From positions 186,001-250,000 of the forward strand of contig JALMLS010000453.1 of the NCBI GenBank assembly GCA_038496445.1: DNA of 64,000 nucleotides, written 5' to 3'. The notes beneath the pieces were generated by a model that had not been told where the DNA came from, did not search any database, and saw only the letters and a program-made list of their open reading frames with translations. Position numbers and translations under genes: made by a program. This document shows positions 378 to 49,683 of this stretch, piece after piece (the first letter of the stretch is position 1; each line of letters starts with the position of its first letter). Source of the DNA: Trichosphaerium sp. ATCC 40318 (Eukaryota; Protista; Tubulinea).

Positions 378-2886
378 ATGAGCGAGCCTGTTACGCTATC
401 TAAAGAGGACGAGCTTAGCTTGTTTCTCGAGAAATGTCAAATAAATAAGTCGTATGTACGTTCTACTAGGTTCACTAGTCACCATTACGCAATAGTGTTA
501 AAATAAGCGGTTAGGGAAAATTAAAAAGTGGTGATATCGTTGCTAGATTTCCAGAATGTCGCAATTTCCCTCGTTTAATATTCAAACAAGCAATTCCGTA
601 TGGTTGAAATTTTCTCGTACCGCAATACGCCATTTCCTTTAATTTACCTTCTAGCGTGAACTTACTTGTATCTCATGGTCATTTACGTGATCTAATACGA
701 TTTTCGTCAGACGACAAGTGGATTTACTTCCCAATAACAAATGGAGAGTTCAGATTATTGATTAAAATCAACAGGCTCAGTGGTGAGGTAATCAAGCCAT
801 CTTTGACAGCAATATATTTAATTTATCCAAAAAATCCCAACCTTCGCGACGTTGTCTTACGCCACATAGCTTGTTGTTGTACATGACTTGACATCTGATG
901 CTAATATTGGTTCTACTTCATTACACGCTATTGACGTCAACTATGGATACGTTGGTACTACGTAGTACAGAGTAGATACAGACTCACTATGTTTTTCAAA
1001 CATTTCAACTAAAAGTCGACTTGTTTGTAACTGCCGGCTGTTTCGTCTCACGTGCACTAGCGCTTATAACATCAAGGCGATTGGTGATACTCTCTGAAGA
1101 TAAGTCCGAGCACGTACCCTCATTTCTTTGTCCATCTTACTTATCGATAGAGTACTGTTCCATGAAGCTTTGGAGGGCGTGAATTCTCAAATAAACGGTG
1201 TCACGTTATGTAACACGGTAAAAAGGTTTTTATTTATGTTGCGGTTAATAGCGGTAATAGTAGTGTCTTAGGTATACCCACGTGTTCATTTAAAGGTTTT
1301 AAAACTCGTCTAGGGTATGAGATTTGTCCCAAAGAAGGAACAAATAAAATATCTCTTAGAAACATTCAAACCGTGGCATCACGTCATCAATCAGCTGCTA
1401 TATCATTTGGTAAGGTTTTAGATGTATTTGTATAGCATTATTTTGATCATTAAACTGACCTTTTGTGCGTTTAGGTGGTCCAAAGAATAGAAGTGTCGTA
1501 CGTTTGATGGGTTTTGGAGGGTGTATCTTTACTTGACTTAGAATATATGTCTAGACGGCTTTAAGCAGCCATGGATTGGTGAGCGCAAAGATGATGGTAC
1601 TTTAGTTGAAGATAAAGCAATGATGTTAGATTACACGGAGGTAAAACCTGTACGAAAGAAAAAAAAAGTTCTACAGTTTTCGTGTTTTTTTCAATTTCTG
1701 CTTTTTTGTTTTCCCTCCAATCCACTAGAATCTTGCGGTTTATTTCGCTGAAAAACTCAGTTCTTGTATTTCATGGTGGTAAAACTTTTAATGTTGTGTT
1801 TGATAGGATAGAGATATCAATTACTGGTCTATGATGTCATCATGGGACCCTACAGGAGATATGGTAGCAATTGGGTACGTAAATACTGTAAAAGAAAACG
1901 TGACAAGCTTTCTTTTTTTGAAACAAAAAAAACCTCACAAGTTTACCCGCCCTTCCCTTCTTACGTTTTTGTTTGCCAAATAGTTGCGAAAGTAGTGGTT
2001 ATCACGTGATAAGCAAAGCATTAAAAAAAATTATTCACACGTTGCCAAGCGGGCAAGTTCGCTGTTTAAAGTTTTCACCTAATCCAAACGTGCCGAGTAC
2101 GTTTATTTTATGTTCAATTTTTTGTTGAAACCAAAGTGTCGACATAATTGTACTCGTCAAATTGTCTTCCTCCTTAACCCTCGTAGTATTGGCATTACAA
2201 CACAATCAGTTGCGTATCGTAGAGACAGATAATTGGTCCTCTGTTAAACTTGACGGTGTAGTAAGCGAAGGACCGGGCGGCCACGCACGGAGGAGATTTA
2301 ATGTTAATTCTTTGACGTGGAATAGAGATGGAACAAAACTGTTAGTTGGTAAGCGAGATATCTCACTGTGTTTAATCTTTTTTCTTTTTTTTGTTCACTG
2401 CTTAGAAACACGTGTTATTGCTCATATTAAATATTTAACACGTGATAAACAAACCAGCATGTTTTTATTTATTTGTTAATGAACAGAAATATGCCATTTT
2501 AACTCTCGACTTTTTAGCGTTCTTGGGATGTATTGTTGAGTATAGCGTGCTTATAGGAGTACCCACATTGTGTGATATTTGCGTTACTTATGTAAGAAAG
2601 AATATAGAAGACGCTGAGAAGTATGGATGGCGGATGGATATTCTACCACCTGTACGAACAAAGAAAACACGCACTTTTTATTTGTTGTGATACAAAACGT
2701 TACTGTACTTTTACTGCACCCATATCATTTTTATTCTTATCCTGGTATTAGGATCTAGCTGAATCGTGTACATCCATAGTAAACAACAGTACTAACAGAG
2801 TGAGTTCAAAATCGTACAGACAGCCTGTTTTGTTCAAAACTTATTTAAAAAAAATTGTGAAATTCTGTTCCAATAAAAAGAACTGA
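378..2886 (+). CDS. Multi-exon beta-propeller (WD40-like) protein with C-terminal BC-box/SOCS-like box
   Basis: ATG at 378 (MSEPVTLSKEDELSLFLEKC). WD-like exons SSWDPTGDMVAIG and VNSLTWNRDGTKLLVG. C-terminal VPTLCDICVTYVRKN..MDILPP/DLAE matches BC-box plus cullin-box pattern. TGA at 2884-2886. Middle exons uncertain. Confidence 0.6.
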
Positions 2887-3279
2887 TCGTCAGATTGGTT
2901 TTATTCATGTCCAGATAAAAATAAGATATTCATGATAAATAAGATATTTTTATACATTGTGTCGGTTTTATTTCATAGTTATTATTTGTGTTTTTCGTGT
3001 AGTGTTACATTATGTACATATAAGTTTTTGTCCCAACGTTCAAAAAGATCGGAAGTTTAGTCCTGATGTTCGTTGTAGTATTCTCTTGTTTTACCCACCG
3101 TTTGTCCAGGCTCGGAATAACTCTAGCACGGCCCTTGCGCAAAGATGACGCACAAAATGAGCAGCCAATCATTTTTTTGCACTTTGAATTTTTACCGACG
3201 CAAGTCTAGCAGCATTTGATGTTGGCGCTTTGTACAAACTTATCAAGAATTGTTTGAGTCTAAGCTTTTATTTTCTAGT

Positions 3280-5231
3280 CTATTTATTGTTGTATTCCTT
3301 TCTTCGTGATGCTAACATATCTTCGATGCCCACTCTTGAATCTTCTACACCATATACATCGAGATATGCTGTTGCAAAAAAGCTGTCTTTTAGATGTGTA
3401 CAATAAACCATTAGACGATTACCATGTACACCACAACTAAATTGGGTAATACACGGAATATCTGGACAATAGAAATCAATTTGTTTCCATTTAAGTGTAT
3501 CTGTTCAGAAACAATGTTAGTTGTAAGAAAAAAATGAGAATTTTTTATGTGGTGGATCCATGGCTTGTTTTTCTGGTTTCTGGGCGTTTTTGCTTTTTTC
3601 AGTTATTAGAGGAGTAAACTTACCAAAGTTAAATCGATACAAATCTTTATATAGGTCTTTACTATTCCATCCACCAAGTATGTACCTGTTAAGGAAATCA
3701 AAAATGTCTCAATAACAAAAAATGTTTAACTATGCATATTTTTTACTTGTAATTGCGGTATCTTACCATTTACCGTCGTACATAAACGAACGCATACGGG
3801 ATCTTCCTGAAGGTGCTATACCGTTCATCTTTACTATTTTCCACATGTATTTTCCTACCACTACTTTAGTGACAAGAAACGCTCCAGAGTAATCCCAAAA
3901 AAACCCAACCTCTCAAGAATTATTTTTGTTTTTTTCTGTTTTTTCTTTTTCATCGAAAATACTCACCTGATTTACTCAGATCCATAGACCACATATCACC
4001 AAAATACTCTCTTGCATTAGTACCACCGAACAAGAATATTTTATCTTTTCTAACAACCATACAGCTCCCTGTACAATGTAAGCTTTTTGAACACTTACCA
4101 TGGTGGAAATGTTTTTCTTCATTTTTTGGTAGCCGTACCACAACGTTGGCAAGGAGTTATTCCTTCAGGTGTTATAGATGTAAATGTGTTTGATTCAAAA
4201 TCATATAAACTAAGATCAGAAAAGAATTGTGGACCGTGTCCGTTCCATCCACCAAAAATAAACATTTTATCATTATAAAGAGCTGCTGCGTATGCGGATC
4301 TTGGAGAGGGAACGTCTCCTTTTGCAGTTTTAACGGATATACCATGTGTAGGAGAATCCAAATCAATCACTGATATATGATCGAGGTAGCTCAAGGATGA
4401 AATGCCGCCAAAAGACCACATTTTACCCTATGTGAAAAAAATAAGAAAACTCCGCCGGTTTAAGTCACTTCGTACCTGATAGACAATAGGTGTATTCTCT
4501 GCTACAATTATCCTTGGATGAATATGTATTATGTGCGTTTCCCATTCACACTGAGGTCTTAATAATCGCCACTCATTTTTCTCTAGACAGTGATTAGTTT
4601 GTAAGTTCAAAAAAAAAAAAACCCCATGAGAAATTGTTCATCAAAATATCACAATATCAATCTTACCGATAGAGTATTTGTACAAGTCACTATGCGTGCT
4701 ACCAATACGGGTCTCACTAGCCAATTTTGTACCTCCATATAAATAAAAACAACCTTTGTAAACCACTAGAAAGAGTAAGAAGATATTTGAAAAAAATGAC
4801 TAAGGCACAATACTATCCGTTTAAGTTGCGGCTTAAAAAAAACTGTATTCAGGTGCTGGTAAATAAAATAATACCTCCTGCCGCGTTTACAAGTTCCCTT
4901 GGGAAGTTCTTTGGCGTTTTACGCTGACTAAATACAGTTCGCGCCTTTTCTCCAATTGTACTATCTAAACAGAACGATACGCTCTTACGCTTCCATATAA
5001 ACGGTGTAGTAAACATTTCATACAACTTCTTGTTTACACGCAGAAGTCTCACCATAGACTTGATATCAAGTATCCTTAGCATTGTTTAATAAGAATTTTG
5101 TACCCGTACTCTTAATTTACGTACTTTAAAATTTTATGCTGCAATTCATCAGGTACATCCTATAGCTACAATAAACGAACTGACAATGTAATGAAATATC
5201 GTACAGAAAACCCGGAAAGCGATGCCTCCAT
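3280..5231 (-). CDS. F-box + Kelch-repeat protein
   Basis: Spliced MEASLSGFS/DVPDELQHKILK/..LDIKSMVRLLRVNKKLYEMFTTPFIWK (F-box). Kelch blades PSPRSAYAAALYNDKMFIFGGWNG..FFSDL, DKIFLFGGTN..YFGDMW, YILGGWNSKDLYKDLYRF. Confidence 0.85.
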
Positions 5232-5939: not shown

Positions 5940-6440
5940 TTAAACTGTTTTCTTGTCTCTTCTCGTTCTGAGTCTAGACTGTATTGCTAGTACTTCAACC
6001 TTCAGTTTACCAACTTTATACCATTCTTTGTACTCTCCAGCAAGAACGCCATCAATGTAGTTACACTTCTTCTTTAGTTTACCATTCTCGTACCACTCCT
6101 TGAACTCTCCATGTAAATTTCCTTGGACGTAATAGCACTCCTGAATAAGTATACCATTTCGAAGCCATTTTTTGAACACTCCACTAGGTTGGCCATGTAT
6201 CCAGTACTCTTGTTGTAATATTCGTGTAACTCTATTGCGATAACTGCATCTCAACCATTTGCCATGTTTTTTCAAGTCAGCATCAAATCTAGTGGTCATT
6301 GCTGTGTGCTTTGAAAGAAGAGGCCAGGTTAAATGTAGTTTGTTATCCAAGTCGAAAATACAAAGGTGTAGCTCAAAAGGAAGACGTAATAGGTGGGGAA
6401 GATATGGTATTGATGATTTATCTGTTTGGTTTGTCATCAT
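5940..6440 (-). CDS. F-box + MORN-variant (MORN_2/YwqK-type) repeat protein, paralog 1
   Basis: LLRLPFELHLCIFDLD..WPLLSK..TTRFDADLKKHGKW followed by about 24-aa repeats such as GNLHGEFKEWYENGKLK. Confidence 0.8.
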   Translation of the reverse strand: MMTNQTDKSSIPYLPHLLRLPFELHLCIFDLDNKLHLTWPLLSKHTAMTTRFDADLKKHGKWLRCSYRNRVTRILQQEYWIHGQPSGVFKKWLRNGILIQECYYVQGNLHGEFKEWYENGKLKKKCNYIDGVLAGEYKEWYKVGKLKVEVLAIQSRLRTRRDKKTV

Positions 6441-6760
6441 TAGATGTGGTGCCTTTTTGTTTAGTATCAAATTGATTAGAGCTTCGTTTGACTACAAAAT
6501 AGGCTGTCTTCTGTAAAAATATTGCGCAAAAAGCCTGTGAGTAGCGCATTTTCTTCGAAGGAGAACGTGTGACAAAGGGTACGCAATAATGTAAACCCCA
6601 TTGACAGCTTGTTTTAATGACAATTGTATCACGTGCACAATAAGTCAAGGTACTTTAAGTCGAGCATAACTTTGCACCTAAAAAGTCTGCAAAATGCAAC
6701 AAAAGTGTCTGAGCGTATTAAATACTGTACAATAGCACACAATAGACCTGGATCGAAAAC

Positions 6761-10788: not shown

Positions 10789-11568
10789 ATGAATAAAAGA
10801 ACGATTACAAACGCATGCTCCCTTACATTGCTCTCACTTCCTTGTGAACTTCAACAGTACATAAGCACTTTTGATGTTGAGGCATTCACAAAGTTCCACA
10901 CTCTTTCAAAAAGAGCAGCAGTCAATACACACTTCGATGAAGGATTAAAGAGGAAAGGAAAATGGATAAGATGGTACAAAAGTGGAAAAGTAAAAGGTCA
11001 TATCTATACAACAGGACTATCTAGAATTTGGTATGAGAGTGGAAACCTAAGGGCACAATATATGAATGTTGAAGGTAAGGTGAATGGCGAGTTCAAGTGT
11101 TGGTATGAGAATGGAAATCTTAAGGAACAAACTTATTGGGGTAATGGTAAACAAAATGGTGAAACAAAGAAATGGTTTGAGGGTGGACAACTTGATGTAC
11201 AGGCCATGATGATTGATGGTGAGCAAAATGGTGTACAAAAAGAGTGGTACAAAAACGGACAGCTTAAGGAACAGAGCATGTGGGTTGATGGTAAGATACA
11301 TGGTGAACTCAAAAGATGGTATGAAAATGGACAACTCATGCAACAAAGCATGTGGGTAGATAACAAAAAAACCGGTGAATCTAAAGAGTGGTATGAAGGT
11401 GGACAACTTAAGAGACAGAGCATGTGGGTTGATAATAAAATACATGGTGAATATAAAAGATGGTTTAAAAATGGGCAACTTATGGAACTCAGTATGTGGG
11501 TTAATGGTAAACAAGATGGTGTACACACGGTATGGTTTGAAAATGGACAAATACTCAAATTAGCCTGA
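10789..11568 (+). CDS. F-box + MORN-variant repeat protein, paralog 2 (intronless)
   Basis: LLSLPCELQQYISTFD..LSKRAAVNTHFDEGLKRKGKW followed by about seven 24-aa repeats W[YF]ENGQL.EQSMWVDGK..GE.K. Confidence 0.9.
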   Translation: MNKRTITNACSLTLLSLPCELQQYISTFDVEAFTKFHTLSKRAAVNTHFDEGLKRKGKWIRWYKSGKVKGHIYTTGLSRIWYESGNLRAQYMNVEGKVNGEFKCWYENGNLKEQTYWGNGKQNGETKKWFEGGQLDVQAMMIDGEQNGVQKEWYKNGQLKEQSMWVDGKIHGELKRWYENGQLMQQSMWVDNKKTGESKEWYEGGQLKRQSMWVDNKIHGEYKRWFKNGQLMELSMWVNGKQDGVHTVWFENGQILKLA

Positions 11569-11596
11569 CAATAGTTAGCTTACAACCCTGCTGATA

Positions 11597-11938: not shown

Positions 11939-13462
11939 ATGGACACCTTAGTTGATGATTGTTTAAAACAAGTTCTGTCTTATTTAACGATTGTTGAACA
12001 GCTTTCGTTTGGAATTACGTGTAGGAGACACAATACGCTCTCTAGATGCGATTTTATATGGTATCCGCACTATAAACGTAAGTTTCCTACAAAAAAACCT
12101 GTTGTTGTAAATATTCACGATTCATTTCTTCGCAGCCTCTCGTACGTCTATACATCTACGTTTCCAAACTTACAAATAAACGTTAACGCCAATTGACATT
12201 TTAAAGGAATCAATGGAATGGTCAATGGGCGCAATTACTCGGTGCTGATCCTGCTATCGTGGTACATCGCGTAGCGAAGCCAATGAAAGATATACAGTGT
12301 ATGAATAACTTACAGCCTCTACAATCAAGCTTTACAGTGTCAGTAAAGTACGTCTAGCATCATTAGCATGGACTGACGCTATTAACTTACAAACTAAGCG
12401 TCTTGACGTTGATATTTTGCTCAAGTTATACAAAGCAAGTTTTATTAAATACTACAGGCTGTTTGTACATTTATATCAATTGGAATTCACGTCGCTTTAA
12501 GTTTTACGCCCAACCGGTCAATGTCTTGTTGTACAAGATAACAGTAAGTTTTTTTTTTGTTGGTTTATCTTCTTTTTTTCTTCGTTCTTAAACACTTCTT
12601 TTAGCATGCCATAGAAGAAGGCTTTGGGGTTCCTGATATCAGAAACTTTATGAATTCATTACATTTATATGATAGGCGTAATATTCTTGGTGTTCTTAAT
12701 GTAGTAAGAGGAGATGTAAGTCTGACAGTTTTTTTAATTTGTTTTTCTTGTTTTTTTCTTACACGTTCTTTGTTGGTTAACATCCCCTTTTAGATTACAA
12801 AGATTCCAATATTTGCTGTTGTAAATCCTTGTGCAGATGTTTTAATGCCTGTCACGATGGTTAGTAGCGCGATACATAGATCTGCAGGACCAGGACTTAT
12901 GCGCGAGCTTATGAATACAGAAGAATTGCCATTTAGAATTACAGGAGAATGCTTGATGACTACAGGTTTGTTTTAGCTCATTTATTTCATCTAACATCGT
13001 TTTATAGGTCACAAATTACCAGCAAAACACATAATACATGTTTGCGGACCACATATTGCTGATGAACCGTTTAATGAAGAAAACACTGAACTATCTCTTG
13101 AAACATGTTTAGATGGATTATATAATTTTTGCTCAAATAATCAAATCCGTGAGGTAGCGCTACCCCTCATTGGAACAGTAGGTATGACTACTTTTAGTAT
13201 ATATGTATTTATCTATTATTACTCATTTTTGTAATTAGGAGGAGGATATGGTGAGTTAGCGGTGACATTGGCAGTAGACTATACTTTTTGGTGGCTTTCA
13301 AAAAATCCAAAGGTTTTTGACAAGATTGTTTTTGTTTGCTTCGATAAGGAGTACCATGATGCAATGAAGAGAGCAGTTTACACGCTATTTGATCCTGATG
13401 ATGAATCACTTGCTATATTCAATATGGATGAATATGAACGACGAGATATGATGGAGTTGTAG
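11939..13462 (+). CDS. F-box + macrodomain (MacroD/GDAP2-like) fusion protein
   Basis: Exon 1 F-box MDTLVDDCLKQVLSYLTIVEQLSFGITCRRHNTLSRCDFIWYPHY. Later exons VVRGD/ITKIPIFAVVNP..SSAIHRSAGPGL..GECLMTTG/HKLPAKHIIHVCGP..IREVALPLIGTVG/GGYG..FDKIVFVCFD form a complete macro fold. Confidence 0.85.
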
Positions 13463-13947: not shown

Positions 13948-15058
13948 CTAGTTTTCAATTCCTGCAACTTGTTTTACAGATTTTAAGTGCTTCAAGCAAC
14001 CATTTGTAATCTGTGGACAGTAATGCACGGTGAGGCGCTCAAGGTTTACCAATGTCTTAAAACCCAAGTCTGTTATCTTAGAGCAACCATACAAATAAAG
14101 GTATTTGACATTGGTCAATGATTTGATTCCATCATCTGTTACATATCTTCCTTGTCTGATATGGACAGTATGTACATCACCAAGTTGTTTGAGCCATGAG
14201 TCTGCTGGAAAAGAAAGCCTAATTTCATGAACATCTTTGAGTGCTTTGATTCCTTCAACTGTAATATAACCACAACTCTCTAGTTTAATTGTGTGTACAC
14301 CAACAAGACTTTGGAGTGCGTCATCTGTCACTGCAGTCCAAGAAAGGTTAATAGTATGAACGCCAGCAAGTGCTCTAAATCCTTTATCGCTCACTTTAGT
14401 ATAGCTCAAGTCAATTGTATGAACTCCAGCAAGTGCTTTCACTCCGTTATCTGTTACAGAGGTCTGAGAAAGTTGAATAGTATGAACGCCAGCAAGTGCT
14501 ACCACTCCTTCATCTGTCACTGATGTGCGAGAAAGGTCAATACTATGAACACCTTTGAGTGCTTTCACTCCTTCATCTGTCACTGACGATTCAGAAAGGT
14601 CAATTGTATGAACTCCGGCCAAATATATCATTGCTTTGTCTGTAATTTGTCGACAACCCCTCAAGGCAAGTTTATGGACTCCTGTAAATTGTTCCACAAT
14701 CTTGTCAGAGGGAAACCCGAAAGTTGTATTTTCTACTAAATCGATTCTTGTGTGTTTCATAATTCCACAATGCTTTACAACTTGTCTCACTTGATTTTCT
14801 GTTGTTATACGTATACTATGGTATCCAACAATGTCATGAACGATAGAAGAAAGGATATGACATGTTTGAGAAGCCGTAAATCGATCTTTGGTTGTATGAG
14901 TTAAAATAATCGCTAGAATCTCAGTAGGCATGTCCAGTAGTGTTGTTTGAGTTCTACAAATTATTTTAGAACGATACAATCAACAAAAACGTTTACCTTT
15001 GATTTAATGTATCATACGCCAAATCAAACGGTTTTTTATTACCTTCTGTGCGATCCAT
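13948..15058 (-). CDS. F-box + 21/22-aa leucine-rich repeat protein, paralog 1
   Basis: Exon 1 from ATG 15058 (MDRTEGNKKPFDLAYDTLNQ), a short phase-2 intron, then LLDMPTEILAIIL (F-box) and about 10 repeats LAGVHTIDLSxTxVTDxGVKA. Confidence 0.9.
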
Positions 15059-15237: not shown

Positions 15238-15954
15238 CTAGCCTTTAAGTGGGAATCGTGTTACTTGTGTTTCTTCTTGCGAGTTGTCAATAAAAATCAA
15301 TGATTTGATGACACATGTCCAATTAAAATCTTTGACACACAAATCAGTTACTATTTTGCCTAGCGTCTCTGGCTTTAGTTTATAATCTCCAAAAGATTGA
15401 GCTATAGTTATATGAGGCGTCCATCTATCTATAAGTCAATATTAGAAAAAAATAGGAAAAAAACTCTAAAGAATATGAAGCTGTTTGTCAATGTGCTGAT
15501 GATTGAAAAACTCTGTTCAAAAAGTCTCTTTTGGTTACCTGATTTGTAGTAAACACTAGGCTCACAGTTTATCGTTTTTCCTCTTGTGGCATTAGTGATA
15601 CGTTCGTGAAGGGATGAAAGAGCTGGTGATCTGATGCACGAGAGGAATAATATTAGGTAATCTCCTGGAAATATACCAAGACCTGAAAGAGACATTGGAA
15701 ATGGTGTTGTTGTGTCAGCAATCGTCGCTAGTGCTTTTTTAACCGCATCAGTGTCGTAAGCATCTGCAAGTTCAAAAGAGAAGTGTGGGAGTGCCTTAAA
15801 GTCATTATCGCCTCATTATAGTTGTTTTCATTACCTTTTTGTCTAAAATACCGCCAACACCGTATTTTTCCTTCATAGTCTTCATTAGAGCGAGTACTCG
15901 TTGTGTATGTTCTTCATCTAGTTCGGCGCCAATGACACAAGGTGCCTTTGCCAT
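15238..15954 (-). CDS. 2H phosphoesterase (2'-5' RNA ligase/LigT-like superfamily)
   Basis: Three exons; two HxS/T motifs, LPHFSF and WTPHITI, separated by PFPMSLSGLGIFPG. Confidence 0.8.
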
Positions 15955-16602
15955 TTTTTGAATGAATTTGATTTGAAAAATCGCAGGCTAATTAAGCCAG
16001 ATTCATAATCAAAGAAAGATGCTAGTCAGTTCACAATTTAGCGCCTACCAAGCCGTGACTATCCCGTATGTTTTATTTAAAGCACGTGATTACTCTATCA
16101 ATAAAAATCACCGTCCGGACATTTACATCGAACTCACGGGTTTTGATAGCAGGTTTCTTACAAGTAAGTATGCATATGCCTTCTGGAAATCAAGATATTT
16201 GAGTTCTAGCCGCTTCTGTAAAGTTCACCTTCTGTAAGTTCTAACTGGAACTGTTCGACATGTCTCATTGAATAAGGCTATCGAGGTGAAGTACAAAAGA
16301 CTGTACAGCTTTGATGTATGATTTATTGTTAGCTTAGCAATACCCACGTAAATGTTACGTTTGACAGTCAACTTTCTTAATGATATTCGCAGTGAAACTA
16401 CTGAATTTAAGCACTTTCACCAATTCCAAACTATTTTAAAGGCAGGCCAGAAATTGCGTGTATTTTGTATAATTTTGCTGCAATGCAGACAATACCATTT
16501 AGGGCATTGCTTTTACCCTCATCTGTTATAGAGTTTCAACATTGTAAATTTATACAGTCTACATTTGCTGCTCATTCTTTAAAGCCATCTGTTACATTTG
16601 TA

Positions 16603-17364
16603 TTATACGTCAATCTTGTGTACACCTGCTAATGCCGCAATACCCTCGTCTGTTATTGATTCACAATCATACAATTTGATTGTATGTACACCTGCCAACG
16701 CCTTCAATCCTTTGTCTGTTACACGTGTATATGATAAATCAATCTCATGTACTCCTGCTAGCGCCTGTATACCCTCATCTGTTATTGATTCACACCACTC
16801 TAAGTTGATTGTATGCACGCCTGCCAACGCTTTCAATCCTTCATCTGTTATTACTGAGCATTGAGACAAGTTAATTGTATGTACGCCTTTCAACGCCTTT
16901 AGACCTTCATCCGTTACATCGCAGCAAGTCAACTCTATAGCATGAACACCCGCCACTGCCTTGATACCTTCATCGCTTATTGGGCAATAATTCAAATAAA
17001 TAGTGTGTACTCCTGCCAATGCTTTCAATCCTTCATCTGATACATACGTGTGTGATAGATTAATTTCATGTACACCTGCAAGTTCCTTTATACCCACATC
17101 GGTTATTAAGAAACACCCACGTGAGTTAATAGCTGTATTCTTCAGCAATGGACTACCTGAAAGTGCTTTCGCTTGAGCGTCATTTCTAACATTAATGCGA
17201 CCATATCCAACATGGGTATGAACAATATCTCGCAAAAAGTGACATGTTTGGGCTGAACGGAGTGTATACTTCCCTTGTTTCAGGATATGCACTATTAATT
17301 CAATTGGTAGCGCAACAAGGTTCCGTTTGTCTTGATTTGTATTTTCTCTATATTTTTTTTCCAT
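16603..17364 (-). CDS. F-box + 21/22-aa LRR protein, paralog 2 (intronless)
   Basis: LVALPIELIVHIL..SAQTCHFLRDIVHTHVGY followed by repeats LAGVHTINLxxCxxITDEGLKA. Confidence 0.9.
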   Translation of the reverse strand: MEKKYRENTNQDKRNLVALPIELIVHILKQGKYTLRSAQTCHFLRDIVHTHVGYGRINVRNDAQAKALSGSPLLKNTAINSRGCFLITDVGIKELAGVHEINLSHTYVSDEGLKALAGVHTIYLNYCPISDEGIKAVAGVHAIELTCCDVTDEGLKALKGVHTINLSQCSVITDEGLKALAGVHTINLEWCESITDEGIQALAGVHEIDLSYTRVTDKGLKALAGVHTIKLYDCESITDEGIAALAGVHKIDV

Positions 17365-17727: not shown

Positions 17728-18421
17728 ATGTCAACATCTGTTAGAATGCGCTCGGTAAAACTAGTAGTAGTTGGAGACTGTTCTGTAGGGAAAACAGCAA
17801 TGTTGATGGCATATTCCATTAATGGTCCTCCAGGAGGCGCCAAATTACCTAACGTATACTCTCTTGTTTCAATTGTTTTTTTACTCACATTTCTATTCTA
17901 GCTATTTGACGACGATTACGGCTCATGTATTTTGGTGGATGGTATTCCAGTTGATCTTAAATTATGGGATACTGCAGGTGAAGGCGATTACGATAAAGTA
18001 AGACCTATAACGTACCCGGGTACAAACATATTTTTGGTGTGCTTCTCAGTTGATTCTCCATCATCCTTTGAAAGTGTAAAAGAAAAGGTAAACAGAATTT
18101 TTTTGTGAAGACATGTGAACCTTGTACTGATTTTTGTGTAATATAAGTGGATTCCAGAAATTTCTACACACTTACATATTGGTTGGTACTAAGGTAGATC
18201 TCAGAGATGCTTCAGATACTATAAATACTCTAGACGCAAAGAACAAAAGTCTAACAGAAGAACATGGAAATAAAATGGCAAAAAGTATTGGTGCTGTTAA
18301 ATATATTGAATGTTCATCTGTTTCCATGGTCGGTATCAAAAATGTTTTTCTAGAATCAATACGTACTGCTTTATTACCGAAACCTGTCAAGAAGAATATA
18401 GAATATTGCACTCTCATGTAG
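17728..18421 (+). pseudogene. Atypical Rho/Rac-family GTPase with an apparent frameshift in exon 3
   Basis: VKLVVVGDCSVGKT, LWDTAGE, YILVGTKVDLR, YIECSS and CAAX CTLM. Exon 3 starts WIPEISTH and hits TAA; YILVGTK lies in another frame from about 18172. Confidence 0.7.
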
Positions 18422-18689: not shown

Positions 18690-19358
18690 TCAATTGTTTT
18701 GTTTAGCAATGCCATTCTCATATATTATCTGCCTGCGTAGGAATCCGTTACCATAGCTACAATACTCACCATGCATCTTACCATTAGCATAGGTACACGT
18801 TTCTTTTAGTTGACCATTTTTATACCATAACTTATACTCACCATTTAATTTACCTTTCGAAAAAAAGTAATCTGCCATTAACGATCCACTTTCATACCAG
18901 TACCTTATCTGACCTTCTCTCTTACCATTTCTATAATTGCATTGATAGTACAGCTTACCAATCGCATACCAGCTCTGGAACTCTCCCTCTAATTCACCAT
19001 TGAGGTAGTTAGATTTTATGCTCAAACTACCATTTGCATGCCATTTCCTGTAAGTTCCATTTAAGGCACCATCATCAAATGAACATTGTAGAAGTAATCT
19101 ACCACCCTTCCTTTTCTCCCATCTGCCTTGTTTATTCATCTTTTCGTTAAATCTTGTGGCCAACGCCGCTTCTTTGTTCAGTAACGGAAAAATAATATAA
19201 AACACGTGGTCTAGATCTATCATGTCGAGGACTATCTCCATTGGTATTCGCAGCAACCAGTTAGCCTTCTTTTTACGCTTCTTAGACTAATTTTTTTATT
19301 AGGGCCTGTTTTAGTAGTGATAAAGTTAACGTACTCGTTTGTGTTTACGTTCTGCCAT
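18690..19358 (-). CDS. F-box + MORN-variant repeat protein, paralog 3
   Basis: Micro-exon MAERKHKR with GTACGT donor, then LLRIPMEIVLDMIDLD..FPLLNKEAALATRFNEKMNKQGRW and MORN repeats. Confidence 0.85.
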
Positions 19359-29816: not shown

Positions 29817-30029
29817 GCTTGTACCTCTTCTTTGCTGAAGTAATGTGAACCCAAAAATACTCCACAATTGAAATCGATTGAAATTACAAATACGCGGAGC
29901 TAGACGACTTAGTACAGCCAAAAACATCCAAACTCAATCCCTCACACGTACGATGGCATTGTCACCATAATAACTGGCTAACTTTGTGCGTGTTAAATAA
30001 AGGTGCAACAATCATACATAAAAACCTCC

Positions 30030-33629: not shown

Positions 33630-34874
33630 ATGCAGTCAATAGCGCCTGAATCTGTTTTCTTATGGCTATACTATGAAGTGCGATATTGGTTATGGTATTC
33701 TAAGCCTTCTAGGCGTATTTTACGAACGCCACCTTACAACCAAGACCAATCACCTCTTCATCTTCTCCCCGATGAAATATGCGTTATAATATTCGTTTTT
33801 CTTCCAGACACAGACCGCTGGAGTATTACCCGTACTAGTCTATCTCTACTTCATATTATCCAAAATTACGTTGGATACAAATCGTACCATCATTTGAACA
33901 CACGTGATTTTACATCAAAACCATGTAAAGCAGTCTTAAAAAATTCTTACATTACACTATACTCAAACAGAAATATCAAGCAGTACGAAGGTGCAAGGCA
34001 TATAAATCTTACTCGTTGCAAGTATATTACAAATGAAATGGCTTCTCTATTTTCAGGTGTACATACTATACGTCTCGTTGAAACAAACGTATCAGATGTT
34101 GGTCTTTCTTTTCTTTCTGGTGTTCATACAATTGACTTATTTGGTTGTCAGAATATATCTGATACTGGCTTGAAATACCTCTCTGGAGTACATTCTATTA
34201 TTTTATCGCATACTCCTATTAGTGATGAGGGGATAAAGGAGCTTTCTGGTGTTAAATACATTGATCTTTACCAATGTAGAAAAGTAACAGATGAAGGCAT
34301 CAAATGTTTAAAAGGTGTTCAAAGTATATTCTTACAGGGAACTCAAGTATCTGATATCGGATTACACGCGTTATCTGGAGTACGTTCAATATATTTAAGA
34401 AGTACTAACATTACGGACGATGGATTAAAAGCACTATCAGGTGTACACACGATTGACGTAAGTCATACCTCAGTTTCAGATGTTGGCATTAAGTATCTTT
34501 CAGGCGTTCATGCCATTAACCTCTCACAAACTAATGTGACTGATGAAAGTCTTAAAGCGCTCACTGGTGTGCATACTATATGTATTAGAGAGAATAGAAA
34601 CATAACAGACGCTGGTTTGAAGTCGCTTTCAGGAGCCAAGATAGTTGATTTGTATGGCTGTAGTGTTTCCGATGAAGGTGTGAAGTGTTTGTCTGGTGTT
34701 ACGGATATTAATCTTGGTAATACTTCCGTAACTGATAAAGGCGTTAGTTCATTGATAGGTGTACGTACTATAGGATTAATGGATTGTACGGAATGTAGTG
34801 TTGAGATTATAGAAGCACTTGTTGATGCTTCTGCACGTGTAATTATGTACAATGACCTAAATCTATGGTATTGA
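33630..34874 (+). CDS. F-box + 21/22-aa LRR protein, paralog 3 (intronless)
   Basis: LHLLPDEICVIIFVFL..YVGY followed by about 12 repeats LSGVHTIDLxxTxVSDxGLKY. Confidence 0.9.
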   Translation: MQSIAPESVFLWLYYEVRYWLWYSKPSRRILRTPPYNQDQSPLHLLPDEICVIIFVFLPDTDRWSITRTSLSLLHIIQNYVGYKSYHHLNTRDFTSKPCKAVLKNSYITLYSNRNIKQYEGARHINLTRCKYITNEMASLFSGVHTIRLVETNVSDVGLSFLSGVHTIDLFGCQNISDTGLKYLSGVHSIILSHTPISDEGIKELSGVKYIDLYQCRKVTDEGIKCLKGVQSIFLQGTQVSDIGLHALSGVRSIYLRSTNITDDGLKALSGVHTIDVSHTSVSDVGIKYLSGVHAINLSQTNVTDESLKALTGVHTICIRENRNITDAGLKSLSGAKIVDLYGCSVSDEGVKCLSGVTDINLGNTSVTDKGVSSLIGVRTIGLMDCTECSVEIIEALVDASARVIMYNDLNLWY

Positions 34875-36942: not shown

Positions 36943-37039
36943 GGGAGTTTTCCTTGAACTTTTTTGGAATTGTATTGTAAATGAGAGCTCGCTTTCAACT
37001 ATCATAAAAGTACTATACATAAGAGAATACAGTATATTG

Positions 37040-38794: not shown

Positions 38795-40564
38795 ATGTCA
38801 CAACAGCAACATAGCGATAATTTTATTGGTTCTTTTTGTATTCCAGATGTACTTGCGACTGTTTTTTCGTTTCTAGACTATGATGATCTTTGTTGCTGTA
38901 CAGCGGTTAATACGATGTGGAGATCGCTTGCGATGCGTAATGGGTTCGTTTAGCGCCGTTTGAAATGTTGTTTAAATAATTAATTTAAAAACTAGCGTGT
39001 GGAAGCATCAATACGCTCAGTACTTTGGTCCAGCCCCTAAAAATGATATGTGTTGGTATGAGAGGTTTCAGAAGACTTATGCATTTGTAGACGGACTTTT
39101 ATCAAAAGGCATGTATTATTCTCTTATACGCTAAGCTAACATGTCAACAGGCCTGTGGAATTCGAAATATTTTGCTATTCGCACACGAGGTACATTCTAA
39201 CGCCTCAAACCGCTTTATTTAAGCTTATACTTTCGTAGGAGATGTTTTTGGAGAAGAAAATAACGTTGTCCACATTGTCAAATTTGCTCCAAGTGTCACC
39301 AAGCACATAGCTTATAAAACGTCTGCAGTACGTTAAAATAGTATTGAATCTCTTCAAAGAAACTAACAGTAATATCAAGGCATTTTGGTGTGAGAAATTG
39401 GGATTAGAAGATAATATTTTTTCACTGGTACGGTTTTCGTCATTTACGGAAAATTCGTAATGTGGCCTTCTCTCGGGCTAAAACGACGAAAGTATGCGAT
39501 TAATCTATACTCACAGCTCCTAGGAAGTGCCAGGACGAAAACCAGTGTTACCATGTTTCGGCATAGACGTACGCAAGCGGTTCTTTTAACTTTTTATTGA
39601 TTGGTTTTTATGTCTTGACATTAATGTTGTTTTTAGCGTGTTGCTGTTGATTTCTCAAAAAAAGAACTTTTAAGGAGAAATACAAGATTAAAGAGAAGTG
39701 TACAATTAGGTAATATTACTTTTGGATTTCCTTATTGTTGTTTGCACAAATGTAATAATTAGCTTACTTTTTTTTTTCTTGTTTAGATTGCTTTTCTATG
39801 ACAAAAATGAGCTATACGCGAGGCAAAGTCCGTGGTAAGAAGACCACATATTATGTAAATGGAGGATTTCCTAGAAAAGATACACGAAGGCTGCCAGTGG
39901 TATCTGTTTCAAAGGTATGCTGAAGAAGTATTATTTCTTCTTGTTGTACTAACTGTTTTTCAGAAAACGTTGACTGAAATGCAACTCTGCACTGATGAAA
40001 TCAGGGCTCGTAACCTCAGGTTACAGCAGATTATGGTTCGTATTGAACAAGGTGCAGATCACAAAATGATACGTATGACGTTACATGGTTCAATTGCAAA
40101 GTAAGAGCTTTTTCTCTTTTTTTTTTCTCTTTGAATCGTTTTTTTTTCTGATTATTTTTGCCCTTTTAGGATTCCACAAATATATAAAGAGTATGTCATG
40201 GGTGACAAAAATATAAAACATACAAAGAGTAGAAAAGCGCTTGTGAAGCAATTAAAGATTCATCTGGATTTATGCGAAAAGAGTAAGTTAAAAAAGAGCA
40301 CTGAATTTTTTTTTTGTTTTATGTTTTTCTATCTCTTCCTTTAATGTTTTCATGATAAAAAACGCTTTTGTACGCGAAAATAATAGTAGTCTTACTACGG
40401 CTAAAGTTGTTTTCAAATGAGAGTTTGTAATTTTCTCAGTATTTTCTTATTTTTGAGCGACGTGTTGACTTTTTTCAGGTATTCCCTTGATTGATGATAA
40501 AAAAAAGAGGAGAGATTTATCCAAATTATTTAATGTAATGGTAAAAACACTGCCAAAAACATAA
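38795..40564 (+). CDS. F-box protein with unrecognised C-terminal region
   Basis: IPDVLATVFSFLDYDDLCCCTAVNTMWRSLAMR../VWKHQY..WYERF; many short exons to TAA near 40564. Confidence 0.75.
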
Positions 40565-40705
40565 AAACAAAATAGACAGAAAGTCAAGCGCAGGGCCGCC
40601 GTTTTTGATGTAGAACAAAAAAATAATAAAAAGGAGAACGTGTATTTTAATGTTAATTGAGTATTTATATCTACACTTTGATTTTTTTGCTGTCTTTTGT
40701 TAGTT

Positions 40706-43700: not shown

Positions 43701-45633
43701 AGAATACCTTTGCCAACGAGCAATCCTCTCTTGGATACTTGTTTTATTTTTGGACGAGTCAATGCATCTTTTAGATATCCTTAGAGGTATTTGAGTGTAT
43801 TTAGAAGTACCTAGGCGCCTTTTAAGGGCTGCATTTTCTTCACTCAGATCGAGAACTTTTTCTTCAAGACCTTCGATTACTGTTACAAGTTCGCCAACTT
43901 CTTGACTAATATTCGTTATTACAAAGTAAAAATACTGGAAACCATACTCATCAGATGTTATAAATATAGTATGATCTCCATCAATAGACCTAAATAAATC
44001 ATAAGAACGTAAATAACCGAAAGAATTAGGTTGACACATACAGTGCTTCTTCAAAAACAGCAATTTGAGTACCAAGTTTTGATTCGGCTTTATGAACTTC
44101 CTTTAGTTGCTAGAGAGCCATCGTTAAGATTATGGTTACAATCAAGCACTTACTTTAATGACAGATAGTATTTTGAGTCTTAAAAAGTGACCACGAAGTG
44201 TCATCCGGTCATCTTGTACGCCAGTTTTTCCAATCAATGCATTTATAAACAACATACTGTTAACCTATTTTACCTCATAAGTCATGTATCCCAAACAAAA
44301 TTGTCATCACCTGTAGCCTCTTATTATGTGATCTCAAATTACTAACCAATTCGTGATATCGTCTTCGCCAAAGTTGGACAAGCTCACTTAAAAACATAGT
44401 TAAAGACTTAACAGACTTAAAGAATGAATGAAAAGTTTCTTCTTTTTCGGACCTGTGAGCGTCTTTTGATACGAATGTGATAGCTGCAAGACTCTCAAGT
44501 ACATGTGATTTCGTTTTTATATTGACACAATCTGTAGCAAGTGTCAAGTATTTGAGTAATTTAGGTATCATTGAAATCATCATGAATCCTTCTTCCTATT
44601 TTTTTTCACTTCGTTATCTTCATTGGTTCTTTGAACTCTTTAAACAATACTTACAACATTCAATATTGCTCTCATCGCGCGACAGCATTCTGCAATAGAC
44701 TCTGAGTTTACTCCTTTCCTTGATAACGGCAATTGTCAAAGAGCGATGCTGTAAAACAATTAACGTACTTTCGTTTATTCAATTGATGTTTGAAAATGCT
44801 GCACAAAGCGTAATGTCCATTGCAGCGTAAGAATTCAGCCACCCATGTTGTAGGAGCCGAAGCTATCATTAATCGTATGTTACGCAAAAAATCAACTTTG
44901 GGACTTGTCCCTGCATATTAGTTAAGCAAACAAACCAGCACGTGACCCCTTTTGTAGTACCCATTCGTTTTATTTTTTTAACTACTTCCATAGCTGGTTG
45001 TTCTTGACCTCTTTCTTTGTATTGGCCTTATCAAACGATTAGAAGGCGTTAAAGCGTGCAAGAAAGGGTACGTACAGATAAGTAACCATTTGCGTTTTGG
45101 TGCCCATGATTTGTAAGAGTCGTCTTTTAGTCCAAGAGTTGGCTAACAGTATTAGAAAAAAACATTTCTTTGCATTTTGAAGCGTAATTAATCACGTGAT
45201 TTCGGTTACTAAATTCAAAACTGATAAAGCATGTAATAAAGTATAAAATCACATGCGTATCACGTGAGTACTGCGTGCCCAAATACCCAAATCACCCAAA
45301 AAAACCACAAAGCAAAAAAAAAAAAAAAACAAACAAAAACGTTACCACTATCTTTTTCTCGAACTGTTTGTTGACTTCCTTCTCGCTAGGCATATCTGGT
45401 AAATTTGCAGGATCAACCGAAATACCAACGCTTTGCTTCCAATCATCGCTGTTAGATGTCTTACCGCTATTAGGTCATCAGAAAAGCTTTTCATCCAAAT
45501 GTTATAAATAAAACAAAAAAACGTGACACGTTGGTTTGACACTAGACACGTACGGTAATGAAGCCCCTAAACTTCTTCTCCAAAAAGATTTTCTCCTCCT
45601 TACGGTTCTATCTGGTTTCAAAGTGGCCGCCAT
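40706..45633 (-). CDS. Diaphanous-related formin (GBD/FH3-FH1-FH2-DAD)
   Basis: MPSEKEVNKQFE (GBD), polyproline FH1, PPVKMRNVMWMKI..GTVWDD, LIDMRRANNI, GNYMNG..RGGCYGFK/LSSLAKL (FH2), LDDAISMMHSGTF (DAD-like). 3' end approximate. Confidence 0.92.
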
Positions 45634-45749
45634 TTTCGTTCAAACGACGGCTAACAATTTTTTTTAATCGCAACACAGAAATTAACAAAGTCAACGTTTG
45701 TACACCACAGGTTCATTTAACACTACACAAAACTGTTTACAACGCTGTA

Positions 45750-46858
45750 ATGCAAAGGAGGAAAGCCAATGATGAAGACAAATGGTAAACACAGTTCGTT
45801 TAAAATAGCATCATAGAATTTGCCTAATGTATGCGTTTAGCATACTACATAGGCTCCCTGTAGAACTTCACAGCGTTATTTGTTGTTTTGATCCTACAAT
45901 ATACGTACAATGGACAGAACTCTCCAAAAGGTACACCATCGCGCGATATATATCTCCAAAACGCGTCAATCATCGAAACAAGGATGATACAACCAAAATA
46001 GTTTTTACGTCAACGTACTTACGCTTACGCTGTAGATTAGCATATTCTTCAGGTAGATTTGATCGTAAATTCAATAAACATGGTCGTTGGATGGCTTGGT
46101 ATGCAAATAGAAAAATTCGAAAAAAAGCAAATTTCAAAAATGGAAATTTGGAGAAAAAATACGAATCTTGGTTTCAGAGTGGACAACTTGAGTGCTTATG
46201 CTTCTATAAGCATAACAAGAAGAGTGGTAAATACTTGACATTCTTTGAAGATGGTAATCGTCATATTGAAGCTTTTTATAAGGCAGACTTACCAGCAAGA
46301 GAATATAAGGTTTGGCATAATAGGGCTTTCGGTTGTAAGTCTGCTTATGTTTTAGAGAGACATGAGAGCTATGAAAATGGTGAAATGGTTGGTGATTGGG
46401 TTTACTCGTACTTTGGGTTTCAAGGTAAGGTAAAGATGGAGGTGTATAGAGCAGCAAAACGATCAGAAACTAGTCATAGGATAAGTTGGTATGTTTTTTT
46501 TTTTTGAAGGTTCCCGTTTCTTAACTATAGCATACCCCGTACTTGCTTAATCTATGTTATATACACTGTATTGATATCAAATACAAAGTATAATAAGCAA
46601 GTATGGGATATGTTATGAGTGGTGGTGCCGAAAGAACTTAAAAAGGTTTTTTCCTTCCAAAGTTTTTTCATACCGATTTGCAATGTGCATGTAGTGTATC
46701 ATAACTGTTATGGTAGGTACAAATCTGGACAAATGCAGAGTAGAGAATACTCTAGAAATGGCTACTTACATGGTGAAAGTACATTTTGGGATAAAAAGGG
46801 AATAGTTAGACGTGTAAAATTTTACAATGAAAAACAAAAAAAAACAGGTTACTTTTAG
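45750..46858 (+). CDS. F-box + MORN-variant repeat protein, paralog 4 (several introns)
   Basis: MQRRKANDEDK/ILHRLPVELHSVICCFD..WTELSK/..RFDRKFNKHGRW, MORN repeats, last exon YKSGQMQSREYSRNGYLHGESTFWDKKG. Confidence 0.8.
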
Positions 46859-47219
46859 GTAAACAACCTAAACGTTACTGTCTTTGGAACCGGTGTTGTA
46901 AGTTAATGCACGAAAAGTATTTTTAATAACTTGTGATTGCATACTCTTGTGGACGCTTTCAGAAGCTTGTAACTTAGTTATAGCTTTACAAGTTATTTTT
47001 TGTAAATAAACAGAATATCTCTTATCAATTTAATGGTCCAATTACTTGAGTCGGTTTCCCTCATTGTCCAGATTGAAGCTTTCATAGAAGACCTTCTAAT
47101 CCAGTCACTTAATTGACTAATAGTCAAGATTGAGGCATAGGCAGTTTAGGTCTATTTATTTGAGTAGATATGTTATACAAGAATTTTTATGCATCTTCTT
47201 CTTGTTTTATGTTACAACC

Positions 47220-48266
47220 TTAAAGCTTCAGTACTTTAACACCACCAAGTGTAATGAGCCAATCTATGTTTGCATTTGTATTTGATAGATCAATGGAGTA
47301 TGTACTTGAAAGGCTTTTCATACATGATCCAGTAATACTTGTACACCCTGAAAGATTGATTGTGTGTACTTCACTCATACCCAAAGCTGAAACGCCCATG
47401 TTTGTCACTGATGTACCACTTAAATTAATGCTATGAACGCCGGCCAAAGCTGATATACCTTTATCAGTTACTGAGGTACCACTCAAATCTATTGTATGCA
47501 CACCAGCAAGTGAACATACACCTTCATCTGTTACACCCATACAAAAACTGAGATTAATGGTATGAACGCCTGAAAGCGATTTTATACCTTTGTCTGTTAC
47601 ATAGGTAGAACTCAAGTCAATGGTGTGAATACCTGCGAGAGATTTTACGCCTTCATCTGTTATTAAACGACATTCTTGTAGATACATTGTCTTTACTCCA
47701 GATAGCACGTGAAGTACATCATCTGTAACACATGAGTATGGTAACCCTACATGAGGTATTCCAGAAAGGGCTTTAAAACCTACGTTTGTCACACCTGAAA
47801 CTTGTAGTAAATAAATATAGTCGAGGTCTTTCACAAGTGGGAAAATGCCTTCATCCGTGATGCCTGAACAATACCATATACTCAAATGACGAACACCACG
47901 TACACTCCTTAGTCCTGAGTCCGTTATGTTTTCATTCTGCCAAAGTACAAGTTGATGAACACCAGAAAGATAAGCTAGATCTTTGTCTGTTGCTTCTGGA
48001 AACGATATAAATGATATTTGTGTATTTGAGAGTAGAGGGCTACCACTTAGACGATGGCAATCGTCAGTTGACCGAATATCGATAAAATTGTATCCTATGT
48101 GATGGTGGATAACGTCAGCTAATACTTTACAGCTCTGAGCGACCCGGTATCTATCAGATACATCAACAAACGCCAGTAAATGGGCGATTATCTCCAGTGG
48201 TATATCGAGCAGCTCAATATCGTCTAATTCTGTCGGTATTTGATAATCAGAGATGAGTTCAGTCAT
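47220..48266 (-). CDS. F-box + 21/22-aa LRR protein, paralog 4 (intronless)
   Basis: LLDIPLEIIAHLLAFV..VAQSCKVLADVIHHHIGY followed by repeats LAGVHTIDLSGTSVTDKGISA. Confidence 0.9.
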   Translation of the reverse strand: MTELISDYQIPTELDDIELLDIPLEIIAHLLAFVDVSDRYRVAQSCKVLADVIHHHIGYNFIDIRSTDDCHRLSGSPLLSNTQISFISFPEATDKDLAYLSGVHQLVLWQNENITDSGLRSVRGVRHLSIWYCSGITDEGIFPLVKDLDYIYLLQVSGVTNVGFKALSGIPHVGLPYSCVTDDVLHVLSGVKTMYLQECRLITDEGVKSLAGIHTIDLSSTYVTDKGIKSLSGVHTINLSFCMGVTDEGVCSLAGVHTIDLSGTSVTDKGISALAGVHSINLSGTSVTNMGVSALGMSEVHTINLSGCTSITGSCMKSLSSTYSIDLSNTNANIDWLITLGGVKVLKL

Positions 48267-48597
48267 AACGTTTGAAGGTTGTTGTGACACACGTGCAAAA
48301 AATGTAACCGATTATTTTTGACTTTATTTCTGAGCACATCGATACTTTCGAGTGACACTACTTTCGTCGTGTTTGACCGCGAGAGCTAAACAACAGAAGT
48401 AATTTTAATTGCAACCGAATAACACAACTGTCATCATCTGAAACGACATTTTACAGCGCAGTTCATCATTGTAACAAAACACAGTACGTTGTACACAACA
48501 GCTTTTTTCTAAATTAGATGCCTTAAGTAGCAAGCGAGGAAGGCTAATATTCTTTGCATCATAATATAGAGGTTATTTAGAAGTAGGAATTCACCAC

Positions 48598-49683
48598 TTA
48601 CAATACACGCCCATATTTATTGGTTCGTTTTCTTTGCTCAATTAAATTTCCATTTTCATCCCACTGATAGCGATCTCCTTTTTTTCTACCATGGACATAC
48701 TTACCCTGCTCTTTTAATTTACCATTAACATGCCACACCTTGAATTGTCCATGTTTTTTATCATGTAAATAGTTACAGTGTTCTTGCAATTTTCCATTCT
48801 TATACCAGCTCTTGAACTCTCCTTGTGCTACATTATTAACGAAATAATGCTTTAGACACATAACTCCGTTCTCATACCATTCCTTACTTTCACCATGACG
48901 TTTATCATCAACCCACATACACTGTTTCTTAAGTTGTCCACCTTCATACTTGGCATACCAATGTTTTTCTTCTCCGTCCATTTTACCGTTAATGTAAACA
49001 TACTGTTTAAGTAATTGACCACTTCCATGGCACCAATATTGACATAACCCATGTTGTACACCATTAGAATACTCCTCTGTTTTATCTAATCTACCTTTTA
49101 TCCAGCTCTTACATACTCCGTCTAGTTTATCGTTTCTATACATGTACTGTAGAGCTAAAAGACCTTTCGTATATTGTCTCAGGGGACCATTCTTTAACCC
49201 TAGAGAATAAACTTCGCTATGAACTAAAGAACCATTGTAAGAATACAAGGTCCATTTTCCTTCTTTTTTCCCATTCTTGTAAGCTCCTTCAATTTCTTTT
49301 ACACCATCTTCAAACCATGTCCTGTATTCACCATGAAGCTTATTATCTTTATAATATGATAGCACATGTTGTCTTCCATTTGGGTGATATTTTTTTGAAA
49401 GTTCCTTCTTCCCGCAATTCCAGTACTCTCGTTGTAGTATAACCTTTCTATCGCTATATTGAATCCATTTGCCGTGTTTATTGAGGTTGTTATCAAAACG
49501 TGTAGTTAAAGCAGCCTTAAGACATAATAAAGGCCATTTAACCGATAGCCACACGTCCAGTTCGATAATATCAAGTTGAATCTCTACGGGGAGGTCTGTA
49601 AGTACAAATCGCTCTTCGAACCCCTAAAAAGAAGCTCAGAAGCATAAAATAGTTCATCACAAAACCTCGTTGGTTCTGTCCAT
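48598..49683 (-). CDS. F-box + MORN-variant repeat protein, paralog 5
   Basis: Micro-exon MDRTNE, intron, then LTDLPVEIQLDIIELD..WPLLCLKAALTTRFDNNLNKHGKW and about 10 MORN repeats. Confidence 0.88.

Follow-up and report, generated by a model that had tools for sequence, protein, structure and literature searches.

Does a short stretch of amoebal chromosome hold a set of ubiquitin-ligase receptors and, if so, where do their genes come from? The question is raised by 64,000 nucleotides of the genome of Trichosphaerium sp. ATCC 40318, a plausibly phagotrophic protist (contig JALMLS010000453.1, positions 186,001 to 250,000 of the forward strand; this whole stretch is the window, and all positions below refer to it). 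The initial annotation had listed 12 F-box genes and one BC/SOCS-box gene here. All of the listed genes are present, and seven have profile support for an F-box: four with leucine-rich repeats (LRRs), one with Kelch repeats, one next to a macro domain and one with an unassigned downstream domain. The five genes listed as F-box-MORN lack such support at the sequence level, however, and the BC/SOCS-box gene was not confirmed. On balance, we favor the view that this gene-dense locus holds substrate receptors of SCF (Skp1-Cul1-F-box) ligases that belong to two or more old, lineage-restricted families, together with three singletons. A diversified set of such receptors, as had been proposed, is supported for seven genes and, by predicted fold, plausible for the five MORN genes.

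The density of candidates is high compared with plants or nematodes. About 26 loci were inventoried between 0 and 50 kb, of which the 12 candidates make up about 46%, in keeping with the "about half" given originally. F-box genes account for about 2.6% of all genes in plants or nematodes. At that share, about 0.7 would be expected among some 26 loci, and by Poisson arithmetic at least seven is far beyond chance. Exons were searched individually, including those of the Kelch, F-box-macro and MORN4 genes, rather than as joined models. Two hidden Markov models (HMMs) built from the N-termini of the LRR and MORN families were run over all six-frame open reading frames (ORFs) and returned exactly five MORN-type and four LRR-type N-termini, with no others.

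Seven genes of the window match F-box profiles

The four F-box-LRR genes (LRR1 to LRR4, Table 1) are supported as F-box proteins. Singly, their bit scores are weak, and only LRR1 passes the curated Pfam F-box cut-off; the call is nevertheless convincing because the evidence holds at the level of the family. All four N-termini are recognized by the family HMM. When public relatives are included, 9 of the 12 family members match F-box-like and 7 match F-box, with best E-values of 2e-5 and 5.5e-6, respectively. A profile of the four N-termini, searched against the PDB, gave seven matches, all of them F-box proteins (FBXW7 at E=0.003, FBXO31, Legionella AnkB and FBH1 among them). Moreover, P0139, the nearest relative of LRR3, carries PF00646.

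Directly after the F-box comes an LRR solenoid of the RNI/CC type, the arrangement that defines FBXL proteins (LRR_6 E-values from 7e-30 to 7e-14), and the AlphaFold model of LRR2 (predicted local distance difference test score [pLDDT] 85.6) finds FBXL2-SKP1 as its best PDB fold match (8e-11); FBXL17 ranks third, ahead of KDM2B and Skp2. The products of the LRR genes resemble Skp2, FBXL2, FBXL17 and KDM2B in having an F-box at the N-terminus and an RNI-like LRR solenoid behind it. They differ from these proteins in a unit of 21-22 residues, where the FBXL repeat unit is about 26, in an identity of only 11-21%, in an F-box near or below the Pfam cut-offs and in a conserved "VGY" linker after the F-box. 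The short unit is also visible in the DNA, as a period of 63/66 nt (14282-14647, 16594-17105 and 47418-47662), and units of different genes are 61-74% identical in DNA to the reference unit. Within the unit the scaffold positions are invariant, and variability is concentrated at positions 4, 6, 9 and 11, which lie on the beta strand and just behind it. For three of the four LRR genes the sequence reads as one uninterrupted exon.

Three more genes match F-box profiles, and for each of them the F-box is supported. In the Kelch gene (Kelch_1, E=2.7e-11), the F-box-like match (18.3 bits) is limited to the second half of the profile, positions 15-45; the first helix, "VPDELQHKILK", can be read from the sequence in a 35-nt mini-exon behind a 50-nt GT-AG intron. 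The gene with an unassigned partner scores above the F-box-like cut-off (Table 1), and the ORF downstream of its F-box exon, 39859-40101, has no Pfam match. The third, first described as an F-box-macro fusion, has both parts (F-box, 20.8 bits, cut-off 20.5; macro, E=1.1e-08), but their union depends on an inferred splice. GT-AG sites and reading frames fit such splicing, whereas the macro part also has a candidate ATG of its own, so that a fusion is possible and two separate genes are the alternative. Spliced together, the exons would encode an F-box-macro receptor, a combination of which we know no description; if separate, the second gene would encode a stand-alone macro protein.

A probable cryptic F-box at the N-terminus of the MORN genes

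The remaining five candidates (MORN1 to MORN5) all match MORN_2 (PF07661), the YwqK-type repeat, strongly, and they share an N-terminal domain with the consensus LLxLPxELxxxIxxxDxxxxxxWPLLSKxxAxxTRFDxxLxKHGKW. Full-length searches return mostly bacterial YwqK-like proteins at 22-38% identity; none of the bacterial matches listed has an F-box, and none is among the proteins that carry the MORN N-terminal domain. An exhaustive profile search of 1.84 billion representatives found 54 such proteins, of which 24 reach E<=1e-10. In all but one of the 54 the domain is located close to the N-terminus, and MORN_2 was matched by 43 of 53 scanned sequences (49 relatives and four N-terminal segments from the window). 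The 20 relatives that were looked up all derive from MMETSP transcriptomes, JGI data or ENA assemblies, with no viral or bacterial name among them; those from MMETSP are spread over few transcriptomes with similar numbering. Two of the relatives, P0288 and P0297, lie on longer metagenome-assembled ENA contigs of 11 and 14 kb.

One of the five genes is expressed, since the transcript-derived protein P0247 is the spliced product of MORN4. Its sequence maps onto exons 45536-45553, 45678-45782, 45842-45931, 46037-46492 and 46721-46855, exact but for two residues.

That the shared domain may be an F-box is suggested by structure prediction. The N-terminal 58 residues of MORN5, modeled by AlphaFold with a 53-sequence alignment, gave a predicted three-helix fold (pLDDT 86.5) with helices at 9-18, 20-28 and 31-37, right after "LP". 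In a Foldseek search of this model against the PDB at E<=10, 12 of 12 matches were F-boxes in Skp1 complexes (MAX2/D3-ASK1, Skp2-Skp1 and 8grf among them). In addition, the pattern LPxE[ILV]xxx[ILVMF] occurs six times in the six-frame translation, in every case within these N-termini.

Several results weigh against the F-box reading. At the sequence level the MORN N-termini do fail F-box profiles, as the LRR genes do not: at E<=1, no Pfam F-box model was matched by any of the five window genes or of the 53 family sequences. Three PDB profile searches with MORN alignments brought up no F-box, only spurious ribosomal L5 or MORN-like repeats. Alignment of the MORN-type with the LRR-type N-termini by hhalign was confined to helix 1 (LPxE), about 18 columns, at a probability of 15-36%. 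The Foldseek matches have root mean square deviations of 1.7-4.1 over 35-45 columns but E-values of 1.7-7.2, none significant alone, and the LPxE motif may itself pull AlphaFold toward a familiar fold. For the locus as a whole, the F-box region of the LRR2 model has low confidence (pLDDT 33-66), and evidence of expression comes from MORN4 only.

These points leave some room for a different reading, a minority prospect in our estimate, in which the domain is a family-specific helical cap or oligomerization module without any link to cullin-RING ligases, and the window has 7 F-box genes rather than 12. Such a module would account for the uniformly negative profile tests, for the empty word search with MORN5 residues 1-62, for the short hhalign overlap and for fold matches that are singly non-significant. 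It would also fit the replacement of the canonical tryptophan after "CK/SK" and the domain's own conserved extension, "TRFD...KHGKW". On the other hand, it would leave to coincidence that every fold match is an F-box, that F-boxes have the same LPxE motif and a like spacing of helices, and that the N-terminal position and the domain-then-repeats layout are the same as in F-box proteins. We therefore regard the MORN N-terminal domain as a probable cryptic F-box, on the strength of the predicted fold, and leave it out of the established members of the family.

Table 1. Established and candidate F-box genes of the window, and the gene first read as WD40-BC box
Gene	Position	Strand	Structure	Domain matches
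LRR1	13948-14979	-	5' exon missing from model	F-box 21.5 bits (cut-off 20.5); 21-22-residue LRR_6 repeats, LRR_6 2.3e-17
LRR2	16603-17364	-	Single exon	F-box-like 14.8 bits; LRR_6 7e-30
LRR3	47220-48266	-		F-box-like 20.6 bits; F-box 18.9 bits; LRR_6 7.4e-14
LRR4	33630-34874	+	Single exon; alone between annexin and UFC1 genes	F-box-like 17.7 bits; LRR_6 3.6e-22
F-box-Kelch	3283-5159	-	F-box divided over two exons, 5125-5159 (35 nt) and 4852-5074; Kelch exons including 4122-4427 and probably 3283-3504; ATG exon not located	
F-box and macro (possible fusion)	11939-13462	+	F-box exon 11939-12143; possible in-frame splicing via 12207-12342; macro exons 12605-12715, 12794-12965 and 13008-13462	
F-box, downstream domain unassigned	Exon 38795-38950	+		F-box-like 28.9 bits (cut-off 24.3); F-box 23.8 bits
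MORN1	5940-6440	-		MORN_2 2.1e-12; family N-terminal HMM 86 bits
MORN2	10789-11568	+	Single exon, ATG to stop; about nine 24-residue MORN_2 units (72-nt period)	MORN_2 2.3e-33; family N-terminal HMM 69.8 bits
MORN3	18690-19286	-	ATG exon not located	MORN_2 2.4e-14; family N-terminal HMM 71.8 bits
MORN4	45536-46858	+	Four introns, one within the F-box-like domain; expressed	
MORN5	48598-49623	-	ATG exon not located	MORN_2 7.1e-18
Claimed WD40 + BC box	378-2687	+	Multi-exon; outside cluster count	

The window copies appear to be ancient paralogs

The MORN and LRR types had been described as alternating in islands, which holds only loosely. A recent tandem-duplication origin of the islands was considered and rejected, given the divergence of the copies, with protein identities of 22-41% within the MORN family and 33-51% within the LRR family, and the scatter of the MORN copies over their family tree. 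That tree, a quick one computed by maximum likelihood from 51 proteins of the family, has a star-like shape, a median terminal branch of 1.41 and one strongly supported fork (MORN4/P0247), and on this low-support tree the five window copies are no more clustered than shuffled labels. Judged by their sequences, the window copies are ancient paralogs, not recent tandem duplicates. At 22-51% protein identity synonymous sites are saturated, so that ratios of nonsynonymous to synonymous substitution (dN/dS) between the paralogs are meaningless.

Such an age would also be expected if the locus were the product of ordinary birth-and-death expansion of housekeeping SCF adaptors, serving the cell cycle, development or life-cycle switching with no pathogen role, and its clustering were left over from local duplications long ago. 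The paralogs show old, deep divergence rather than recent amplification, and some public relatives are nearer than any window neighbor (LRR3-P0139, 49%; LRR1-P0121, 45%; MORN1-P0251, 49%), as in long-retained lineages. Against this stand several hints of conflict: the LRR family is common to giant viruses, F-box expansions have been linked to amoeba-associated microbes (PMC4209131), and the variable positions of the LRR unit fall at the expected ligand contacts, although none of these hints is decisive. We consider a purely housekeeping role rather unlikely.

Relation to giant viruses

Kinship with viral proteins was observed for the LRR family. In the viral structure library BFVD, the LRR2 model matched proteins of Hyperionvirus (34-41% identity), an F-box protein of Tupanvirus soda lake (39%) and an F-box protein of Barrevirus (33%), with further matches in Catovirus and Harvfovirus; several of the viral matches are named F-box. 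The top matches have E-values of 7e-18 to 2e-15 over about 200-280 aligned columns, and their identity to LRR2 is as high as that among the window's own paralogs. At 33-41% identity, LRR2 appears to belong to the giant-virus F-box/LRR family, beyond generic LRR similarity. The F-box/LRR multigene families of Klosneuvirinae and Tupanvirus (Mimiviridae) have the same architecture and are apparently the same family as the window LRR genes, and comparable F-box expansions are known in giant viruses (PMC5753266). Unlike the viral genes, those of the window lie in a host chromosome, with host composition and host neighbors; spliceosomal introns are shown for MORN4 only.

The published analysis of the Trichosphaerium sp. 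ATCC 40318 genome (Tekle et al. 2023, PMC10521059), in which GC (guanine plus cytosine) is 37.7% and introns average 75 bp, attributed 1,581 genes to giant viruses, with F-box and MORN as the commonest domains and with Indivirus, Harvfovirus, Hyperionvirus, Catovirus, Tupanvirus and Pacmanvirus as the viral best matches. The window presents the same picture as these "giant-virus-derived" F-box/MORN genes. Ubiquitin is nowhere mentioned in that paper, and we did not find an F-box-like N-terminus on MORN genes, or the clustering of the genes, reported there.

As proposed for Trichosphaerium, the cluster genes might be insertions from Mimiviridae-like viruses, domesticated or carried as neutral passengers, instead of a receptor arsenal evolved by the host. 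The best BFVD matches of LRR2 are viral, with E-values down to 7e-18 and a nearness equal to that of the window paralogs, and the published study names the same viruses. Several features of the window speak against a recent insertion. The window is eukaryotic nuclear DNA with a GC content of 36.8% overall, even at 34-41% across 2-kb windows, and the family genes do not differ in composition from their neighbors (GC 0.375 vs 0.375; GC at third codon positions 0.311 vs 0.307). GT-AG introns of 48-228 nt split window genes into short exons; they were read directly in a Rho-family GTPase gene and are corroborated by the public spliced transcript product that maps onto MORN4, where one intron falls inside the N-terminal domain. 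The family genes are scattered singly among host genes, interspersed with those for Rho, GMC oxidoreductase, annexin, UFC1, formin and an SR protein, and no viral hallmark gene was present among the ORFs scanned in the window. In limited single-protein scans of IMG/VR with MORN5, LRR2 and MORN2 there were no relatives, a search of IMG/VR for the MORN N-terminal hallmark motif gave 0 matches, and none of the 20 MORN relatives looked up is viral. We judge a viral derivation of the cluster unlikely; moreover, it concerns origin and is compatible with SCF-receptor function.

The motif "AGVHTIDL" occurs at 22 IMG/VR loci, but none encodes a relative by tblastn, and we take these for chance matches. 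An endogenous giant-virus element was rejected on account of uniform composition, ordinary host genes among the neighbors identified, introns and the lack of close relatives in the limited IMG/VR scans.

The cluster genes thus look native in composition and introns. Their sequences suggest that the LRR and MORN families belong to a gene pool common to amoebae and Mimiviridae-type viruses. Best-hit similarity gives no direction, and capture of host genes by viruses therefore fits equally well. Given the genes' native composition, their introns and a paralogy that is both ancient and dispersed, calls of viral origin from best hits seem to need a rooted test of direction.

Proposed function and comparison with other F-box expansions

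In the SCF-receptor reading that we favor, the N-terminal three-helix F-box would dock onto Skp1, as expected from family membership, and the C-terminal repeats would bind the protein to be ubiquitinated through a 21-22-residue RNI/FBXL-like LRR solenoid, a MORN_2 beta-hairpin array or a Kelch propeller. Skp1 binding and ubiquitination by the cluster proteins are what we infer from such membership; the window itself has no Skp1 gene. A putative role in host-virus or host-parasite conflict, including the cell-autonomous immunity considered in the initial annotation, is possible.

Further parallels come from amoeba-associated microbes and from nematodes and plants. In Parachlamydiaceae, expansions of F-box, BTB or U-box proteins with LRRs (NEX1 and others) form large, dynamic families with an N-terminal F-box, a conserved linker and a variable number of LRRs (PMC4209131). 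The Legionella F-box effectors AnkB and LegL1 were among the PDB matches of the window LRR queries. Both groups are bacterial secreted effectors, however, whereas the window genes are intron-bearing eukaryotic genes. In nematodes and plants, F-box expansions likewise consist of numerous genes in clusters whose products vary in the recognition domain at the C-terminus; they differ in the kinds of recognition domain and in their documented positive selection, and the window paralogs are far more diverged.

Lineage-specific F-box expansions are already known, as is the trade in F-box, LRR and MORN genes among amoebae, their bacteria and giant viruses. To these the locus adds one more case, clear and well resolved, rather than a principle of its own. 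A family so far annotated simply as "MORN repeat" appears to have a cryptic F-box; were Skp1 binding to be confirmed for it, many amoebal and possibly giant-virus "MORN" genes would become ubiquitin-ligase receptors. A bolder proposal, which we hold to be quite improbable at present, is that the MORN_2 genes are an unrecognized class of SCF receptor beyond the reach of current profiles, confined to one amoebozoan-like lineage, and that together with the virus-shared F-box-LRR family they form chromosomal islands in a ubiquitin arms race between host receptors and viral mimics.

Other genes and features of the window

The gene at 378-2687 had been described as a WD40-BC box protein, and this identity was dropped for want of Pfam, PDB or motif-statistics support. 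Its eight exon-sized ORFs gave ANAPC4_WD40 at E=0.02 as their sole signal and no relevant PDB match, and the exon at 2439-2687, where the SOCS box was sought, matched nothing in Pfam or the PDB. A BC-box pattern does occur at 2562-2594, but it carries no weight because it is one of 81 matches in the six-frame translation of the window, which is chance level; the BC pattern followed by LPxP (the Cul box) is absent from the window.

Ordinary host genes were recognized throughout the window by Pfam matches of exon-sized ORFs. Besides Ras/Rho GTPase, GMC oxidoreductase, RRM/SR protein, annexin, UFC1 and formin genes, they include a 2H phosphoesterase, an ADAM-like protease and a TKL-type kinase; several further loci matched no Pfam model. 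A tRNA scan and an Rfam scan of the window found none.

Some of these neighbors have features of their own. The Rho/Ras-family GTPase gene at 17728-18420 (+) has two introns of about 48 and 60 nt and an unusual insertion, SINGPPGGAKLP, after the P-loop region. Between LRR1 and LRR2, at 15432-15812 (-), lies an exon of a gene of the 2H phosphoesterase/2',5'-RNA-ligase superfamily. At 28584-29141 (-) and 29667-29933 (-) there are an RRM exon and, downstream of it, a low-complexity RD/RS tract, rich in arginine and about 185 residues long, which suggest an SR-type splicing factor; the tract produces long spurious ORFs on both strands. At 52018-54165 (-), an exon for a reprolysin/M12B-like metalloprotease (53914-54165) precedes Cys-rich and EGF_3 exons (53266-53652 and 52018-52533), and the whole looks like a gene for an ADAM-like secreted protease.

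Toward the end of the window, 55186-55870 and 63248-63943 form three collinear inverted-repeat blocks, 75-94% complementary, around about 7.4 kb that contain the TKL-type kinase gene (58.1-59.4 kb). Each arm has a similar small ORF with a signal-peptide-like start, at 55388-55618 (-) and 63560-63802 (+). The arrangement represents an inverted segmental duplication or, alternatively, an element bounded by long inverted repeats at its termini.

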